Source: Bugula neritina (taxonomy: Eukaryota > Animalia > Bryozoa). From it: DNA of 64,000 nucleotides. The stretch spans positions 8,918,722-8,982,721 of the forward strand of contig OZ037766.1 of NCBI GenBank assembly GCA_964035545.1, given 5' to 3'. Below are positions 40,787 to 50,545 of the stretch, one piece after another (position 1 is the first letter of the stretch; every line of letters starts with the position of its first letter). The notes under the pieces were generated by a model that was given only the letters and a program-made list of their open reading frames with translations, was not told the origin of the DNA and ran no database searches. A program made the translations under genes and the position numbers.

Positions 40787-42375
40787 ATGCTTCCAACTGT
40801 TTAGAATTTACCTTTGAAGGAACTGATTTGACAAATGGCTATAGATTTACAGAGAGAAGTTAGCTGTTACTATTAATAATATTCTCACCTATCCCTGCTT
40901 TGTCCTGTTCAGGTAGCGGGTATACAACTAATAGCATACATGTAGTTATGTTGAGCAGTTGAATTTTTAAACTATAGTTTTTAATTTCTTTGTATTGGTA
41001 TGGTATACTTAATAATATGTCTTCAGAGAAATTTATTTTGACTACATGTTCCAAGTTTCTACGCATGATTTTTCATTTCGAGTTTCAAAAAATGTTTCTA
41101 TTTTTAGATGACATGAAATTTATAATGCTGTGTAATACTCGTGTATTTATCTTCAAGAGTTTCTATTTTGTATATGATTTAGTTTTAATATTTATAACCT
41201 GAAGTTTTTAGATTGCTTTTTATTTTTATATAAGATTATTTTATTATTGCTGCACATGACTCAATTAACACCTTAATTACTCTGTAATATGCCATAGTGT
41301 CTCAAAAAATTTGTCTCCCTGCAATTTGCATTTCATTATCAAATAAAGTTAAGATGTCTTATTTTACCTGTCTCCGTCTTTTTCAAGATTAATTGTTTCC
41401 ACTATGAATCAGCCGCATTTAAGATAGAACTTATTTATTGTTTATTAATAATTTGAAGCTTTTGAACTTCAAGATTGGTTGAGGTTTAGCAAAAGTTGTA
41501 TTGATTGCATGCAAGGCTCACATTAATAAATAACATTAATCATTTCTACAATGCTACCTAACCTCTCTTTGATCTTACTTAATAGATGATTATTTTTTAT
41601 TTACAAAAAGTTAAAGTTGTTTTATGGTAATGGGAATAAGGCTCTTTCAGCAAAACCTTCATAGGCATTAAAGTTTCATTCAACGCTGAAACATGTTGTG
41701 TTTTACAATATAAATATTTTTTTATTATGTTGTTGACAAAACTGCTATTTTATCTTGGAGTAATTAAGATTTTTATTATATTTGTCAGTTTTAATTAAAG
41801 TTTCAAATAATTATACCTGTAAGTAAGTAATTAGACATAATGCCATAAATTAATAGTTAATTTGTAGCTGGTGGCAAGAGATTAAATGAGTCATTTACTG
41901 GGACAGGTAGCATGTCACCAGCTCTTGTCATAACATGGAATTACTTGATCGCATACCAAGTATAAACTGGCACTAAGTTGAAATATTTCAATAAAACTCA
42001 GACAAACTCTAGAAGGATCCTTTTCCTCTTATTATTTATGCATAATTAGAATACCTTCAAAATTAGTATAACATTTGTGTTTAGTTAATGGAGCAGTCCT
42101 CAAATTATTAAAATGTTATATAATACATACTACCTAAGCAGGAATGGTAAATTAACTGTATAAATTAACATAACTTACTAAATCCATTTAATACAACTAT
42201 ATGCAGCAACACAACCCCCCCCCCACCCCCTGAACAATTTTAAATAAGATGATGAACTCAAAGACTAAAAACAAATAATCAAATACTAAATAATGATAAA
42301 TTTAATAGGAAAATAAAATAGTATTTGGCATCCAGTATTTTACTCGCATATGCATCTATCATCCATTATCTAGCT

Positions 42376-42718
42376 CAGGGCTGTACAACAGGCGACCCCA
42401 GGGTCGGATGTGGCCCCCAGCCTACATTTATGTGGCCCTCGAACGCATATAGAGCTAAAGTTATTTTTCACATGTATACATGAATTACAATCATTGTACA
42501 ACCTTTTAAATGCCTTATTTATACACATAATGCAAAACATACAGCCTGCAGTAACTACTGGGACTTAATTGTATAATGATTCATAAAGTTTTGGAATAAA
42601 GTAGTTTGAAAAATGCTGATGTTGTGGCCCCCAACCCAAACTGAAGTTTACAATGTGACCCTCGTCATGAAATATTCCATTTCTGTGGCCCTCGATCTGA
42701 AAAGATTGGACACCCCTG
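42376..42718. mobile_element. Non-autonomous hAT-type DNA transposon (MITE), 343 bp
   Basis: TIRs CAGGGCTGTACAA ... TTGGACACCCCTG (reverse complement CAGGGGTGTCCAA); five subterminal TGTGGCCC-like motifs; TCTAG in both flanks (degenerate hAT target site). Confidence 0.75.
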
Positions 42719-43011
42719 GACTCTAGTATATTACTAGAAAATCAACCTTTTTTCTTCGCTATGTCCACATATACTGAAAACACTTTTCTGCACCAAAACA
42801 CTTTAATAATAATTTGATACTTCAAGTCACCCATGGAACAATGTTCTTTAATTTTACTACTAAATTCTTGCGAGAAAATAACTTTTTTTGCTGCATTGCT
42901 AACCTAGAACACATGCTTTTCTAAATTTCTCCATTACTGCACCTACCTTAGAAGTATCATAAGTGTTGTTGAGTGGTTATTTATTCTATAGAAAAGTGAA
43001 AGTGTATCAGA

Positions 43012-43688
43012 CTAGGTCTTTGTCCACATATGTGGACACAATACCCTTTAACTTCAAGTAAAATATTTTGCATCCCTTTTGTGTAACATTTTGGGGTTGT
43101 TTAGTCCCAATAATTACCTATACGGTAACCGAATGTTATGATTTTACAATCAATATTGAAAGCATGTCTGCATTTTAAAAATTATTGAATCAATCTACAA
43201 AAAGTTTTTATCGCATGAGCCAAATAAAGTAAAAGGGAAATTTTTTTGAACACTTACTACAAAAACTAATCAACCCTCAACTAAAACAGCAAAAGCCCTG
43301 GCTAACTCGGCCAATCCCAAAAACCTTAAAATGCAAAAATGCAAGCTGTAGCAGAAAAACTAGATATGTGATTGCTCAATTTACATGCAACACCTCTGCC
43401 AAGAACTTTTTAGAAAAAAATTAATAGTGATAATAACTAAAAAAAAAGAACTGTGTAAAGGATATACAGAGAGTTGAAAGTTTTGATTTAGCATCTGTAG
43501 ACTTTTATAAATAATTTGACTGCATGCCTGTATCCATGCATGTTGTTACAGAGATAATATAATATTAAACCATCTCAATCAGTGCATGCAAATGTTTAAG
43601 AACAAATTGTTAAAAAAGAAGCTCTCTATTTATTTGTTGTAGAATAATAATTGTATCCACATGATCTGTGGACAATCATAGGACCTAA
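43012..43688. mobile_element. Possible degenerate MITE with palindromic subterminal motifs
   Basis: Left TAGGTCTTTGTCCACATATGTGGACAC; right TATCCACATGATCTGTGGACAATCATAGGACCTA. Confidence 0.35.
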
Positions 43689-44703
43689 AGAAATACATGA
43701 TATAGACATAGAATTGTTTTACATGTAAAGGATGAATATTGAAAAAGCATCAAATATATATAAAGACATTTGCTAAGCAATTTTCATTGAATAGCTTGCA
43801 AGAAAGCTCTAAATATAGTATAATTCAAATCATGCTATTTATAATAATGACCATGCTCTTCTGAGAGTTAAAGCCATAATAATCTTGTTTCTACTTGAAA
43901 GGTGTTGTGAGCCATTTGCAATATATATTTTTAATTGCAAGCTCAACCATACATATCATCTGTCTGCAATGAGCTGATTACTGCTTATACTGATCTCTAT
44001 TTTTGTTCTAGGCATATGCAAATCCTTGCTATGCACAGGAGATAAATTATTGTTGCAAGATAATAAAGCCAGTGCATGGGAACTTTTAAAAGTAATTTTT
44101 TTTGTAACCACTGATATAAGTATACCATTAAAATAATAACATACTATGAATTATAAACTGGTCACCTTTGGTCACCTTTCACCGCGTGGTCCAGCGGCAG
44201 GGGGTCTATAAATTTTGAATTATTGTTTATAAAAAATCATTTTGCTACTCAACAGCTATAGCAAAATGTTATTTGTCTAGAAAGCTTCTTCTCTTATATT
44301 ATAAGTGTTGCAGTACAGTTAAACCATGTATTATACAAAATAAGTGTCGTTAAGTTTCCCAGAAAATAAGGTCACTTTTTCTTTTAATTATTAATTATCA
44401 TTAAGAATTTCATAGAAATATATTTTGTCAAAATGTACGTCAACCAACTAATTAATTGAACATTTGACACGGGTGCACCTAATTATCGTCTATCATACAG
44501 AGTGTTTATTAAACTAGAAATATTATCAAATCCTTATATATGATGCTAGCTGTTTAAGGAAATTGATTTAGAATGATGAATTGTAAGACGGTTCAAAACT
44601 TATCATATTTAAAACAATGAATAATTCTACTGATATTGGCATTTGACACAAGTGTAATTGAAAATGATGGATGGATAAATCGATGAACAGCCTTCTCCAT
44701 TCC

Positions 44704-44711
44704 TATAAAAG
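44704..44711 (+). promoter_or_regulatory. TATA box of the orphan peptide gene
   Basis: TATAAAAG about 30 nt upstream of an Inr-like TTATCAGATT; non-coding first exon ends at AAAAG|GTTTGT (44787). Confidence 0.65.
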
Positions 44712-45025
44712 GTCAGAACTCTTTGGAGTTTTATCAGATTCTCACAGCTGAAAAGAGAAGCAACTTGAAAACTAAACTTCCTAAAAGGTTTGTTTTTATT
44801 GTGACTAAATGAAGAAATAAGTATACATAATATGTTATTTAATTGAAATAAGTAAAGCTATATCAACCACTATTGAACATATTTGTTATAGTGTTTTCAA
44901 GTAACTTGCAACATAAGCTGTGTCAACATTGAGTGCATTTACTTTATACTTGATATAGCTGCGTTTGTCATTTATGTTCTTTATTTAAAATCTAATACAC
45001 TATTTTTTGCTTGTAGATTTTCAAA

Positions 45026-45811
45026 ATGGGCACTTCGCTATTGTTTGCTTCAATCTTCTTAATGATGGCTTCAGTTGGACTTATTCAACCTGCTGCAGGG
45101 CAGTTTATTTTGCGCAATCAATTGATTACAAGACCAGTAATAACACGCTTTTCTGGAGTCAATTCTATTCTTACACCCCGTTTGATTAGGGGAGGGAGAA
45201 TTGCAAGATTTGGAGCTGGACTGGGTTTCTCTAGGTTGAGGTATGTGTGTGTTGTCAATGTATTTATTCGTGCTAATAATTTGAATATACATAAAACTTC
45301 CAAGTCTTGAAAAGTAAAAACTTTCAATAATATTATATTAATTCATGATTGCAATTGCTTTTTAAATTTCGATCAAATGTGAAAAGACATTTTAAACAAT
45401 TTCACCCTTGATTATAAGTAAACTCTTGTAGGCCTTCTGTGGAGAAGCTATTACTATATTAATAACAACTATACCATTCGAAATGTTTTAAATCACATTT
45501 AGCAAAATATTAGCTTATACCAAGAAATGTTAATGTACTATAATATGTTAAAATTATATGTTGAACTATTAGTGGAAATTAAAAAACGGCAAACATGTTT
45601 TAAATCGAACTATAAAGTTTATGATGTAAAGGAATCTTTTTGCCATCTTATTTTTAACATACTCTTACTTGTTTTATGCAATGATGTTATGATATTCTGC
45701 AGGGGTAATAGTCTAATAAGAGCAATACCTATTAGAAGAACCAACTTCATTCGCTCAAGGCTCATTGGGAGTCCAATACTGCAACAAAGAGTTTTACTAA
45801 GAGCTTTTTAA
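45026..45811 (+). CDS. Orphan secreted Arg/Ile/Leu/Gly-rich cationic protein, 107 aa
   Basis: Coding exons 45026-45240 and 45703-45811 joined in phase 2 (TTGAG|GTATGT ... TTCTGCAG|G). Signal peptide MGTSLLFASIFLMMASVGLIQPAAG. Kozak-like AAAATGG, TATA at 44704, AATAAA at about 45894. Both exons share the same Arg-rich composition. Confidence 0.82.
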
Positions 45812-46023
45812 TATGCAGCAAAGTTATTTTGTTAGTGTTTAAGTTAATTTTTGTTGTTGATTGTATTATTGTTACGGTTATGTGTTTCATACAAATAAAT
45901 AAATTATAAATTATTTGAAATTTAAGAAGGAATTCAATTCATTACAGGTGTTATTGTTTAAAGGGCTTTGCTTCTACATATGTACTTTTATTGATTTCAA
46001 GTTCAAAATCTTATTACAAATAC

Positions 46024-46076
46024 CACACACACACACGCACACACGCACACACGCACACACGCACACACGCACACAT
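46024..46076. repeat. (CA)/(CACG) microsatellite
   Basis: cacacacacacacgcacacacgcacac... Confidence 0.9.
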
Positions 46077-46958
46077 GCAAGCATTTTGTCCTCTACCTTA
46101 AATAAAATTTATAAATAATGTGGGATAACTAATGACATGTTAGTAATAATGCTGTTGACGGATGTAGAAGTTACTAGTGCTGCACACGGAATTAATATGA
46201 TATTCTGTCACACAACAGTATAGCCGCCAAAATAGCTTAAATTATTATCATGAGTGAAGCCAATCTATTATTGCAAGATTTTCTGTACACATGTGTATTG
46301 ATTCTAGATAAACGTACTTTTTTATTAGAGTAGCAAACTGCAGATATAATTTTGATCAAATCTTTGCATCTAACTCCAAAATACAAACTACAAGAAGTTT
46401 TTGTTTTATTTACATATTATATGTAAATATTTTGCAAGCATTGGAAAAAATCTGCCATTTAGATTAAATTAGCCACTAGTGATGATGCAACCTACTCAAC
46501 ATCTAGAAAGTTTTACCATTGAAAATCACAAATTTATCAGCTGCATGGCACTACACTGTGTGCAACTGAAAAATCGAAATAAATTCCATAGTTATCTAGA
46601 GATAGAAAATCTAATTTGCTACATATATAGAAGATAGGCTACACAGCTTATAAGGCAAATAGTTATATAATACTAACGACATTAAAAATTCACCACAAAC
46701 ATTTTCAACAGTTACTCTTAAAATCATAAATTCATGTAATATAGCAAATATGATTGGTTATCAACCCATGTTGTACCATCAATTAGCAAAAACCGATTAT
46801 CATGCATATGAATAGTATTATGTACAACGTTGTTAATAAATTCTTAATTTAACCTTAAATTTTATGCTCATGGCAAAATTTTTCCAAATTCACAAATATG
46901 TTACAACTCCAGAGCAGCTTTTGAAAATACTAGTAGAAGTTGATAACGTAGTGCCATC

Positions 46959-47471
46959 ATGACCTGTAGTGCTATACCACTAGAGTGTAATATCAGAAGT
47001 ACAACACAACAGGACATGGCGGCTTACCAATCACCTGTGATGGACTGCCAAATGCTATCTAAGATATTACGTGAAGCTCCTGGCAATCAAGTTATAGTAA
47101 TGATGTAAGCTCAGAACAGTGTGTTATGCAGGTTGCATTTCTATGTAGTATGCTTCCATAAAATCAATTGTTTCTCATTAACAGAGTAGAATTCTAGGAT
47201 AATATATATTATTTGAAAGATGCATTCGCAATATATTATCTGTATTGTCATTTGCAGATTTATTAAAATCATTTCATCAACTTTTACAATTGAACTCTTG
47301 AAATCTAATTCAAAGATGCACTTCAGACGAATGACTATTGGCAGAGAAAATATTACGATGATTAAAACACTACAGAAAACTGCCTTTCAACTTCTCTCTA
47401 GGTGCCATCTTCTCATCAAGCCTAATTACTTTCTAACTTTCAAACTGCACCTTCATCAAACACACTTCTGA
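46959..47471 (+). other. Candidate spliced orphan ORF (119 aa) or lncRNA
   Basis: GCCATCATG start; exons 46959-47104 (donor GTAAGC) and 47258-47471 (acceptor TTTGCAG) join in frame; AATAAA at about 47723; no recognisable homology. Confidence 0.25.
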
Positions 47472-47828
47472 CAGTTTCTTATTCAATGTCTAGATTTAAG
47501 GCTATTAGTTACTAAGGAAATTGTGGCCACAGCAACTTTACCAATACACAAGTTGTGTGACAACATATGTGTCTTCATATAAGCTCATCAGTTTACTTTA
47601 TTCATGCATATTCCATTCTAGTCAACTTTCAAATATATATTCTATATCATTATGTCGCAATACCTCAAATAACCCGCTTCAAATCTTCCTTTAATGCGCT
47701 GGCACAATTTTATTTGTGTACAATAAAATCAAATGGTTAACATACATCATAGCAATATAAGTTACAAAATACAAATGCATAGCATCATAGTATATATACA
47801 TATATATACAGTATATAATGCTTCAACA

Positions 47829-50545
47829 CTAATAAACCCGCCAATCTGTTTGAGTGTGAATATCATTCAACAAATAGTCGAAATCGGTCTGAGTAGAGCT
47901 TTGTGATAACACAGCAGTTTGCTCGATCCCTGCACTGTCTTCATACATATATGTAGCAACATCTGCAAAATCTGGAGTTGGTGAATGAGTCTGAGTGCCA
48001 AAATCCATGACATCAAAAGGAAATTGCATTGCAAAGTCTGAAGTACTTTGATGAGCGGAAGAATGAGACGGTTGTGGTAAAGTCGGCCTACAGTGTTTTG
48101 GTATTTCCAATTGTTGGCTCAAATTACGATTTTTCGTAATTGTTTGAGTCCCAAAAGAGTTTACTTCAGTTACATTTTGAGACGAGACAGAAAAATCTGT
48201 AGAATGTTCATCATGACTAATACTAAACATATCATCTGTTTGCGTTGCGTACTGGTCATTACCTTCATGAAACACCTGAGTGTCTGGGTGTGAGGAAAGC
48301 TGATTAGCTGGAATAGTAAAATGGCAGTTTGACTGAGTAGGAGCAACAGCAGATGATAAAAATTGTTCATTAGTTTCAGTATTAAATAAATCATCAGTTT
48401 GAGTAGCGATTCGCCGCTCATAAGAGGTTTCAAAAATATCATTTTGCGCAACAAACTGATCTTTCATTGATGCTTCAAAACTGCGATCGGTTTGAGTAGC
48501 AAACTGGTCATTAACCTGATAATTGAACTGAGTATTAGTTTGAGTACCAAAAGAGATTAAATCGTTTATAGTTTGGGAAGTAGAATCAGTTAACATATGC
48601 AGAGAAGCGTCACCAAGTTCACATTGCAACTCCATATTTGAAGAGCTAGAGTTGGCTAACTCATTAAGAAAAGTTGACAAATTAGTCTGTGTTCCAAACT
48701 CAGCATTTGAGACGGGTGGTGTAGAAGTAGCGATCATTGATGTCTGCGTACTAAAATCTGAAGGTGTAATTGAGCTCAAGTCATGACAAGGACCTACACC
48801 TATATCTGTAGTAGACATCTGTGAAATAATGCTGCTTTGAGCCTGCACTGAAGGATTGCAAGAAGCTCCAGGGTTTGATGCCCAAATCAATGGGTTTGAA
48901 ATGTTGTGATTGTGCAAGGTACAGCCTTGCATACTAGCTGACTGATTGACTTGTAGATTCATAAACTCATCAGTTCGCAATATCCGGGCTGGGTTGGAAT
49001 ATAGATTGAGGTGTGGAAAAGTGCGTTGCGCAGCATAACACTCATGTCTAAGAGAACTCCTTCTGGATGAAATACAAGGCGAGAAAACAGGCTGATGAGT
49101 TGAAATGCTATTAGAATGATCATCCTGTTTATGAGTATCAGTTTGAGTTGAAATACTCGTTTGCCTGTAAACTGGTTGATCAGTCTGAGTGAAATCTTGC
49201 AGGGAGGTTTGGGTGGAAGAATCAATTTGGAGTGTTGTGACTTTAGGAAGCAACTTCACATATCTATTAGCAGAAGACATCTTCCCAACAACCCTAGTAA
49301 ACAGAGTAGGTGTGCAGCTTCCTATTGATTTGTCAGCGATTGAAGTTTTACCATTAGAGACACATGGGGCTTCGTCAGCTTTATCTGTAGCACTACTCGT
49401 CAATGCGTTTGATAGAACAGCTGGTTGCCTGAAATAATTTCAATAAAATGCATTTAGATGTATTGCAGTTGAATAAACCAAAAACTATCACTACAATATA
49501 AAAATATAGCTGTTTTACAATTATTTTACAAAAATTTCTCCATTATTAATTATTTTGTCTGAGTGAGAGTTGTCATTCCAAATACTATTTATTTCGCTGA
49601 ATGGTTTACATTAATTACTTAGTATTCACATAACATAATAAGTTAAACAACATTATTATACAGCCGTAACACATAAAATGATGAAGTTTGTAACATAGAT
49701 TTATATAATATAATGTAAAAAAGGCCTAACTATTGATGAAGAGGAAAAAGTTTCATTACTAAGAATTAGATCAGCATATAGGCCTAAACCAATAATAAGA
49801 AATGACAATAATTTTTATGCTATGGAAACTTACTGCGTATTCAACATGGTAAAAGGTTGGAAAATAGCAGTGTCCTCCCCATAGGTTTTACCATGCTGTT
49901 TCCAGATATGCACAGATATAGCTTCTTTGGTAGAGTAGGGTGTCTGGCAGAGAAGACACAAGTAAACATTTCCACATTTCTGTTTATGCAATATTAGCTG
50001 TGGATTAGTAGCAAACTTTTTCTGACACTTTTCACAGGTTAAGATTTTTTCTCCATGGATTTTCTTGTAATGCTAAAAAAACATAAGCATACTTAAATAA
50101 ATAAGGCATGGATAATTTTTGAAACAAAAACTGTAAGACTACTACTAATAAAGTTGGTGTACCATTCGGAGCTGTTTGAACTGTGGAAATGACCTCTCCT
50201 TTCTTGATCTTGAGCAGCCCTTTACAGGACATAGAAAATGGCGCGTGACTCCCGTTTTCTGTGCAACATTTTTTCGGGAATAATCTCCGTAACCCTAAAC
50301 ATGAAAGCTTCACTTTATAAGAGCGTCAAACAGCTTATGGATCATTAAAACACAAATAAATTTAAATAGAATAAATTACACACTTGCAGCTTGTGAGTAT
50401 TGGTCAGATGCATATTCAATGCAGGTCTATGTTTAAACACTCGCCCACATTCTGAAAACATGCATCGAAGGTTAGTCTCTGAAGGTTTGCACAGCTCAGT
50501 AATACTGGGAATAACAATGTCATCGTCGCACTCTTTCTCTCCCAT
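47829..50545 (-). CDS. ATMIN: ATM interactor / ASCIZ zinc-finger transcription factor, about 710 aa
   Basis: Exons (-): 50384-50545, 50163-50294, 49834-50072, 47829-49428. N-terminal zinc fingers (CMFSECGRVFKHRPALNMHLTNTH; FLCPVKGC..FPQFKQLRMHYKKIHGEK; CEKCQKKF..HKQKCG; CLLCQTPY..HIWKQH) followed by a disordered tail with 13 TQT LC8-binding motifs ending DIHTQTDW. Confidence 0.92.

Follow-up and report, generated by a model that had tools for sequence, protein, structure and literature searches.

Peptide genes in which a conserved signal is followed by a hypervariable, cationic mature region are typical of antimicrobial peptides (AMPs) and of secreted toxins. Mussel myticalins and other invertebrate AMPs, frog skin peptides and cone-snail toxins all pair a conserved signal with a hypervariable mature region, and the myticalins are, in addition, cationic, linear and cysteine-free. 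The Pro/Arg-rich AMPs (apidaecin, Bac5/7, PR-39, arasin) are similarly rich in arginine, non-helical and devoid of cysteine, and presumably act in an extended conformation; an anionic pro-piece usually masks linear AMPs. Further points of comparison are the legume NCR, weevil coleoptericin A and aphid BCR peptides, which share with the case described here lineage restriction, secretion, positive charge and the setting of a host with a vertically inherited symbiont. To our knowledge there are no characterised gene-encoded defence peptides from bryozoans, among which Bugula neritina serves as a model in work on fouling and on defensive symbiosis.

The gene that we describe here lies in a stretch of B. 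neritina DNA of 64 kb, referred to as a whole as the window, and consists of two coding exons at 45026-45811 (+), joined via a GT/AG phase-2 intron, that specify a leader of 25 residues and a chain of 82 residues. Its predicted product is linear, cationic and cysteine-free like the myticalins, and is without sequence similarity to these, to frog skin peptides or to cone-snail toxins. Unlike the genes for those peptides it is single copy, with no family of shared leaders in the 216-Mb genome, has no anionic pro-region, derives its charge from arginine only, and changes rate within a single exon, at the very point of cleavage. The chain exceeds the Pro/Arg-rich AMPs two- to fourfold in length, contains 5-8% Pro and lacks PRP-type repeats; assignment to that class, which needs about 25% or more Pro together with Pro-Arg repeats, was rejected on the values found (4/82 and 7/85 Pro, no repeats). 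The NCR, coleoptericin A and BCR peptides differ in being mostly cysteine-rich and in belonging to large families.

Searches, folding and record look-ups were run exon by exon. In the 216-Mb genome either exon, used as a protein query at E values up to 10, matched itself only, as did exon 1 or the leader used as a DNA query, and the gene is single copy in the B. neritina genome. Pfam returned no match for either exon. A word search of 5.8 billion proteins gave one match (P0001), which was found again at E = 7e-42 in an exhaustive HMMER profile search of 1.84 billion representatives. Three further HMMER matches (E 1e-4 to 7e-4), namely an LRR-Roc-COR protein and bacterial surface-type repeat proteins, were set aside as unrelated, being long, multi-stretch repeat proteins of different make-up. 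For exon 2 the best score in an ESM Atlas feature search was 0.82 with low recognition, which is at noise level; nothing was on record for the unspliced 94-aa open frame, and neither back-translated leader motifs nor the exact 23-mer of the leader identified further orthologs in metagenomes, a collection from which entries close to this genome may have been withheld. An earlier sequence-only reading of this DNA had recognised no family for the peptide, a view with which the empty Pfam result and the recovery, by word and HMMER searches, of a single ortholog plus unrelated repeat proteins are in agreement. As the databases hold very little bryozoan sequence, 'orphan' should be understood here to mean that, beyond the B. 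neritina complex, relatives are not seen, and the best reading is that the gene would be taxonomically restricted to B. neritina.

The matching protein is encoded on two JGI metagenome contigs of B. neritina, L003 and L004, both named with AY690838, under which the mitochondrial genome of B. neritina is deposited (PMC2678162). Both align with positions 42671-47569 of the window, indicating that they represent the orthologous locus and, on the evidence of the alignment, the ortholog from a sibling lineage; B. neritina is a known cryptic-species complex (PMC11480708). Between the two contigs, which come from two JGI samples, there is no base mismatch over about 4.7 kb, and there are five internal indels of 2-81 nt. 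Since they differ by indels alone we count them as one genome, and they probably stem from the same colony or clone, or else the indels are assembly differences. The comparison reported here thus covers two lineages, and the two contigs are unusable as a sample of within-lineage polymorphism.

Comparison with the ortholog was the basis for exon 1 and for both splice junctions in the gene model, the coordinates of which are collected, with those of neighbouring features, in Table 1. TATA-box promoters are typical of regulated, tissue-specific genes, and transcription of the present gene should begin some 30 nt past its TATA box. The start codon ATG at 45026 stands in good context (A at -3, G at +4), exons 2 and 3 translate to 71 and 35 residues, respectively, the junction codon split as AG+G across intron 2 specifies Arg, and the stop codon TAA occupies 45809-45811. 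The sequence-only reading had described a complete, compact gene for an Arg-only polycation of secreted type, and this model is intact in the sequence, with the signal peptide judged by rule; its exon 2 start, given as 45019, is corrected here to 45017, a slip of 2 nt within the 5'UTR. An imperfect 30-nt inverted repeat (44743-44772 and 44893-44922), with one arm in exon 1 and the other in intron 1, brackets the first donor. Its end stems, of 7 and 10 bp, are perfect; the repeat is largely kept in the ortholog, and may be due to chance, since eleven other comparable pairs occur in the same 6.8 kb.

Table 1. Coordinates of the peptide gene and neighbouring features in the window, with the comparison to the sibling-lineage ortholog.
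Feature	Position	Strand	Basis or remark	Comparison with ortholog
MITE-like interspersed repeat, ~350 bp, 2.4 kb upstream	42369-42720		Genome copies and imperfect inverted-repeat ends starting CTAG	
TATA box TATAAAAG	44704-44711	+	Sequence, core promoter	
Core promoter and probable non-coding exon 1	44704-44787	+	Sequence and ortholog comparison	TATA box and exon 1: 95% identity (80/84 bases, first 79 all identical)
Exon 1 donor G/GTTTGT	44787/44788	+	Sequence	Conserved
Intron 1, within 5'UTR, GT...AG, pyrimidine tract ahead of acceptor	44788-45016	+	Sequence	88.6% identity; indels of 3 and 1 nt
Intron 1 acceptor AG	45015-45016	+	Exon 2 start = 45017	
Exon 2 start: 9 nt of 5'UTR, ATG, 25-codon signal-like leader ending AAG/Q	45017-45100	+	Translation	Leader: 92% DNA identity, 23/25 residues same
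Exon 2 remainder: first 46 mature codons and 2 bases of junction Arg codon	45101-45240	+	Translation	Mature part: 62% DNA identity; in-frame indels of 6, 24, 3 and 9 nt
Exon 2 donor AG/GTATGT	45240/45241	+	Sequence	
Intron 2, phase 2, GTATGT...CAG	45241-45702	+	Sequence	75.7% identity; eleven indels, one (12 nt) a multiple of 3
Intron 2 acceptor CAG/G	45702/45703	+	Sequence	
Exon 3 coding part: last base of junction Arg codon, 35 codons, stop TAA	45703-45811	+	Translation	Mature part: 53% DNA identity; ortholog 5 codons (15 nt) shorter, same frame
3'UTR with two overlapping AATAAA (45894-45903)	45812-45905	+	Sequence	83% identity
Raised-divergence island between lineages	45101-46530		Starts at signal-cleavage codon, ends at ~500-bp stretch absent from ortholog	

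The flanking non-coding DNA, which is 90.9% identical between the lineages across 2.9 kb, provides a baseline against which the identities in Table 1 can be read. All four splice sites, the phase of intron 2 and the Arg junction codon are kept in the ortholog, whose exon 2 is 24 nt longer than that of the window. Indels whose length is a multiple of three make up four of four in the coding sequence and two of 13 in the introns (Fisher p = 0.006), and the proposed frame alone is open through both exons in both lineages. The diverged coding parts nevertheless remain homologous, with alignment z scores relative to shuffles of 6.8 for exon 2 and 6.5 for the DNA of exon 3. Because the ortholog keeps the TATA box, exon 1, splice sites, phase and leader, and because the coding indels are all in frame, we take the gene to be real, and consider that the comparison makes it very probably protein-coding. 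The pair of AATAAA motifs is absent at the aligned position in the ortholog, and the two lineages may accordingly use different poly(A) sites.

In a check against signal-peptide rules the leader presents a 16-residue hydrophobic core, with A at -3 and G at -1 of the cleavage site, followed by a conserved Gln-Phe. AF2 modelling of exon 2, in which both orthologs were used, gives a leader helix spanning residues 2-17 at a pLDDT of about 80, the value for the mature part being about 50, and the product of the gene is, in our estimation, probably secreted. Following AAG/Q cleavage the mature chain of 82 residues would have 16 Arg and be devoid of K, D, E, H, C, W, Y and M, giving a net charge of +16 and a GRAVY of 0.19, with 39% I/L/V/F, 8 Gly and 4 Pro; the translated exons thereby match the Arg-rich and Lys-, acid- and Cys-free composition previously claimed, in the count of Arg, the charge and the residues that are absent. 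The corresponding chain of the ortholog has 85 residues, of which 17 are Arg and one is Glu, and lacks K, D, H, C, W, Y and M; its net charge is again +16 and its GRAVY 0.19, with 38% I/L/V/F and 7 Pro. The same eight residue types are therefore absent, or nearly so, in both orthologs, in which about half of the aligned residues are identical, and neither chain (82-85 aa with 0-1 acidic residue) contains an acidic pro-piece or cysteine.

A six-frame scan of the 64-kb window found five stretches with at least six Arg per 30 residues and without D, E or K, two of which are exons 2 and 3, on the same strand and joined in frame. On base composition Lys and Arg would be expected about equally often, so that finding no Lys in a total of 33 basic residues from both orthologs has a chance probability of ~3e-10. 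Given the rarity of such Arg stretches, the complete lack of Lys and the existence of a sole frame open in both lineages, the composition of the peptide is more than chance.

Two other elements of the sequence-only reading fared less well. The recurring hydrophobic-hydrophobic-Arg pattern that it had pointed out corresponds to no consistent periodicity, the period-3 stretch in exon 2 of the window being missing from the ortholog. Its premise of a cationic amphipathic peptide was likewise not borne out: neither helical nor strand amphipathicity rises above shuffles, the mean 11-residue hydrophobic moment at 100 degrees exceeding them in none of the four exon pieces (z -2.3 to +1.5), and with a pLDDT of about 50 the mature chain is, on these models, probably disordered.

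Several established classes were considered and rejected on these properties. A helical AMP of the cecropin or magainin type is not indicated by hydrophobic moments no higher than those of shuffles or by short AF2 helices at a pLDDT of about 50; in addition, the mature peptides of that type are usually under 50 aa and often accompanied by an acidic pro-piece, as against the 82-85 aa and 0-1 acidic residue here. Marine adhesive polycations such as mussel foot proteins 3/5 and the sandcastle-worm Pc proteins do not correspond to a chain with no Tyr, Lys, His or repeats. Protamines and other sperm nuclear basic proteins have no signal and contain more than ~50% Arg in runs, where the present sequence has a conserved leader and 20% Arg that is dispersed. 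As regards neuropeptide and pro-hormone precursors, no dibasic site, R-x-x-R or amidation Gly is conserved between the lineages.

Values of dN and dS were obtained by the Nei-Gojobori method from the comparison of the window with its ortholog. For the leader (dN 0.036, dS 0.25, dN/dS 0.14) they indicate purifying selection. For the mature codons dN is 0.45 and dS 0.75 (dN/dS 0.6), this dN being about four times the divergence of the flanks, and the 53 non-synonymous differences over about 158 mature sites are more than the rate in the flanks (p = 1e-17) or in intron 2 (p = 0.006) would give. A conserved signal region is thus followed by a hypervariable mature region, the pattern by which conserved-signal/hypervariable-mature peptide genes are recognised. 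The coding DNA contains no tandem repeats, and repeat slippage was on that ground discarded as the source of the divergence.

The island of raised divergence extends beyond the coding sequence. Within it, identity in 100-nt windows is 64-81%, except for 91% at 45450-45549; outside it, identity is 86-97% over 42750-45049 (78% at 44050-44149 excepted) and 81-97% over 46550-47549. Intron 2 and the 3' flank have also diverged beyond the baseline. At the 3' edge of the island about 500 bp, corresponding to 46021-46527 of the window, are missing from the sibling-lineage contig; a (CACACGCA)7 microsatellite at 46024-46079 opens this ortholog-absent stretch, and 46085-46530 is single copy in the genome. 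Since two lineages only are compared, positive selection with linked effects, old allelic classes maintained by balancing selection and a local mutational effect are inseparable. The high dS of the mature codons (0.75), taken with the divergence of intron 2 and the 3' flank, keeps a local mutational or deep-coalescence effect alongside positive selection, whilst the position of the rate switch inside one exon, exactly at the signal-cleavage site, favours selection on the peptide.

The explanation that we regard as best overall, and as a good possibility although short of a probable one, is that of a real, single-copy and restricted gene, selected for its bulk properties, whose product is an extracellular effector of defence or microbe interaction. 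As for the peptide itself, our tentative reading of the sequences is of a lineage-restricted, disordered and rapidly diversifying secreted polycation that would most likely serve in host defence or in interactions with microbes. In such a mechanism a cleavable signal peptide would be followed by a polycation of ~82 residues carrying +16 from arginine alone; selection would keep the frame open, the signal for export intact and the bulk properties of charge, hydrophobicity and use of Arg in place of Lys unchanged, and the mature sequence would be replaced at several times the local non-coding rate. The guanidinium groups and hydrophobic side chains may bind polyanionic microbial surfaces or membranes in an extended, non-helical form, function would depend on arginine and hydrophobic content and not on a fold, and the peptide would diversify under conflict with microbes. 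We rank a role in host defence or microbe interaction ahead of the alternatives because the combination of conserved leader and hypervariable mature region is best known in defence peptides and toxins. Against it, 82 residues is long for a linear AMP and there is no anionic pro-piece, amphipathic periodicity and a confident fold are both absent, and there is one copy of the gene, where defence peptides are in many cases encoded by gene families. The lack of NF-kB-type sites anywhere in the window may be counted on the same side, although with 0.9 such sites expected by chance this is uninformative. The pattern seen between the sibling lineages fits a lineage-specific antimicrobial or a symbiont-control peptide. 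Symbiont control is a special case of the defence or microbe-interaction reading, in which the peptide would be a tool with which the host manages 'Candidatus Endobugula sertula', the symbiont that makes bryostatins and is passed on vertically, or the microbes of the larva or ovicell, and divergence between sibling lineages would track differing symbiont strains or symbiont absence; we give this particular form only a very slim chance.

A different account of the same properties is that of a structural polycation, forming a charge-driven coacervate with polymers that carry acid or sulphate groups in the glue of the larva, the cuticle or the lightly calcified skeleton, with a function set by composition and not by exact sequence. 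The two lineages do share charge (+16), hydropathy and residue set in chains whose residues are only half matching, and the mature part is predicted to be disordered and contains Gly, Pro and Ser without a fold, all of which would suit such a role. A constraint on composition only should, however, give a rate at or below neutral, and the dN of 0.45 is about four times the flank divergence; moreover, the absence of Tyr (and hence of DOPA chemistry), of Lys and His, and of repeats is unlike known marine adhesive proteins, and the gene is single copy; we judge the structural role to be unlikely. So extreme a difference between two lineages within a recognised complex of cryptic species (PMC11480708), in a single-copy gene with a secreted, cationic product, might also be expected of a reproductive protein of this sperm-casting animal, located on gamete or sperm-storage surfaces and diverging between cryptic species in the manner of abalone lysin. 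This we think distinctly improbable, as lysin-type proteins are folded and the present chain has no fold, and as the argument stands on rate of change alone.

Two further explanations can be set against the evidence from conservation. That the locus represents an open frame arisen by chance, or a transcript of recent origin with no function as a protein, would agree with the failure of the spliced protein to appear in the searched collections and with an AATAAA that is not conserved, but it is very unlikely in view of a frame that survives four in-frame indels and a same-phase intron in both lineages, of a leader whose dN/dS of 0.14 points to purifying selection, and of the conservation of charge and composition and, above background, of the TATA box and exon 1. 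Least probable of all, we consider, is a precursor of hormones or neuropeptides that is processed at basic residues to yield a number of small products. In its favour are the signal peptide and the abundance of Arg, with R-x-x-R occurring several times and RR a few times; yet no RR, R-x-x-R or terminal amidation Gly is kept at aligned positions, acidic spacers are absent, and the whole mature part is hypervariable, where known precursors keep their peptides and cleavage sites and allow the spacers to drift.

If active, an arginine-only, acid-free and cysteine-free chain of 82 residues would be an unusual scaffold, and if the peptide were in fact used in symbiont control it would be the bryozoan counterpart of peptides of the legume NCR and weevil coleoptericin type, on a new cysteine-free, arginine-only scaffold. 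A structural role, should that be the true one, would suggest that bryozoan glue or cuticle is assembled by charge. A conserved export signal and a fixed +16, Arg-only make-up, combined with fast turnover, offer a clean test of selection on bulk physicochemistry as opposed to sequence, and the gene is a candidate marker of divergence between cryptic species.

The window is AT-rich animal DNA (29-40% G+C), in which a gap of ~7 kb surrounds the peptide gene. Scans for Rfam families and tRNAs, run over 42-48 kb, found nothing, and four larger open frames elsewhere in the window had no Pfam match. The sequence-only reading had located the gene between other genes in a gap containing a MITE, and the repeat 2.4 kb upstream is indeed multi-copy, with at least 614 first-look candidates in the genome, 40 scored copies of which are 82-87% identical; its inverted-repeat ends were not reported by the repeat finder. 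The alignment with the orthologous contig begins inside this repeat, at 42671. Downstream, in convergent orientation to the peptide gene, there is an open frame of 524 codons at 47829-49403 (-) with no Pfam match, which contains more than ten TQT motifs (FGTQT, ATQTD etc.) and, as judged from its sequence, looks like the LC8-binding tail of ATMIN/ASCIZ.
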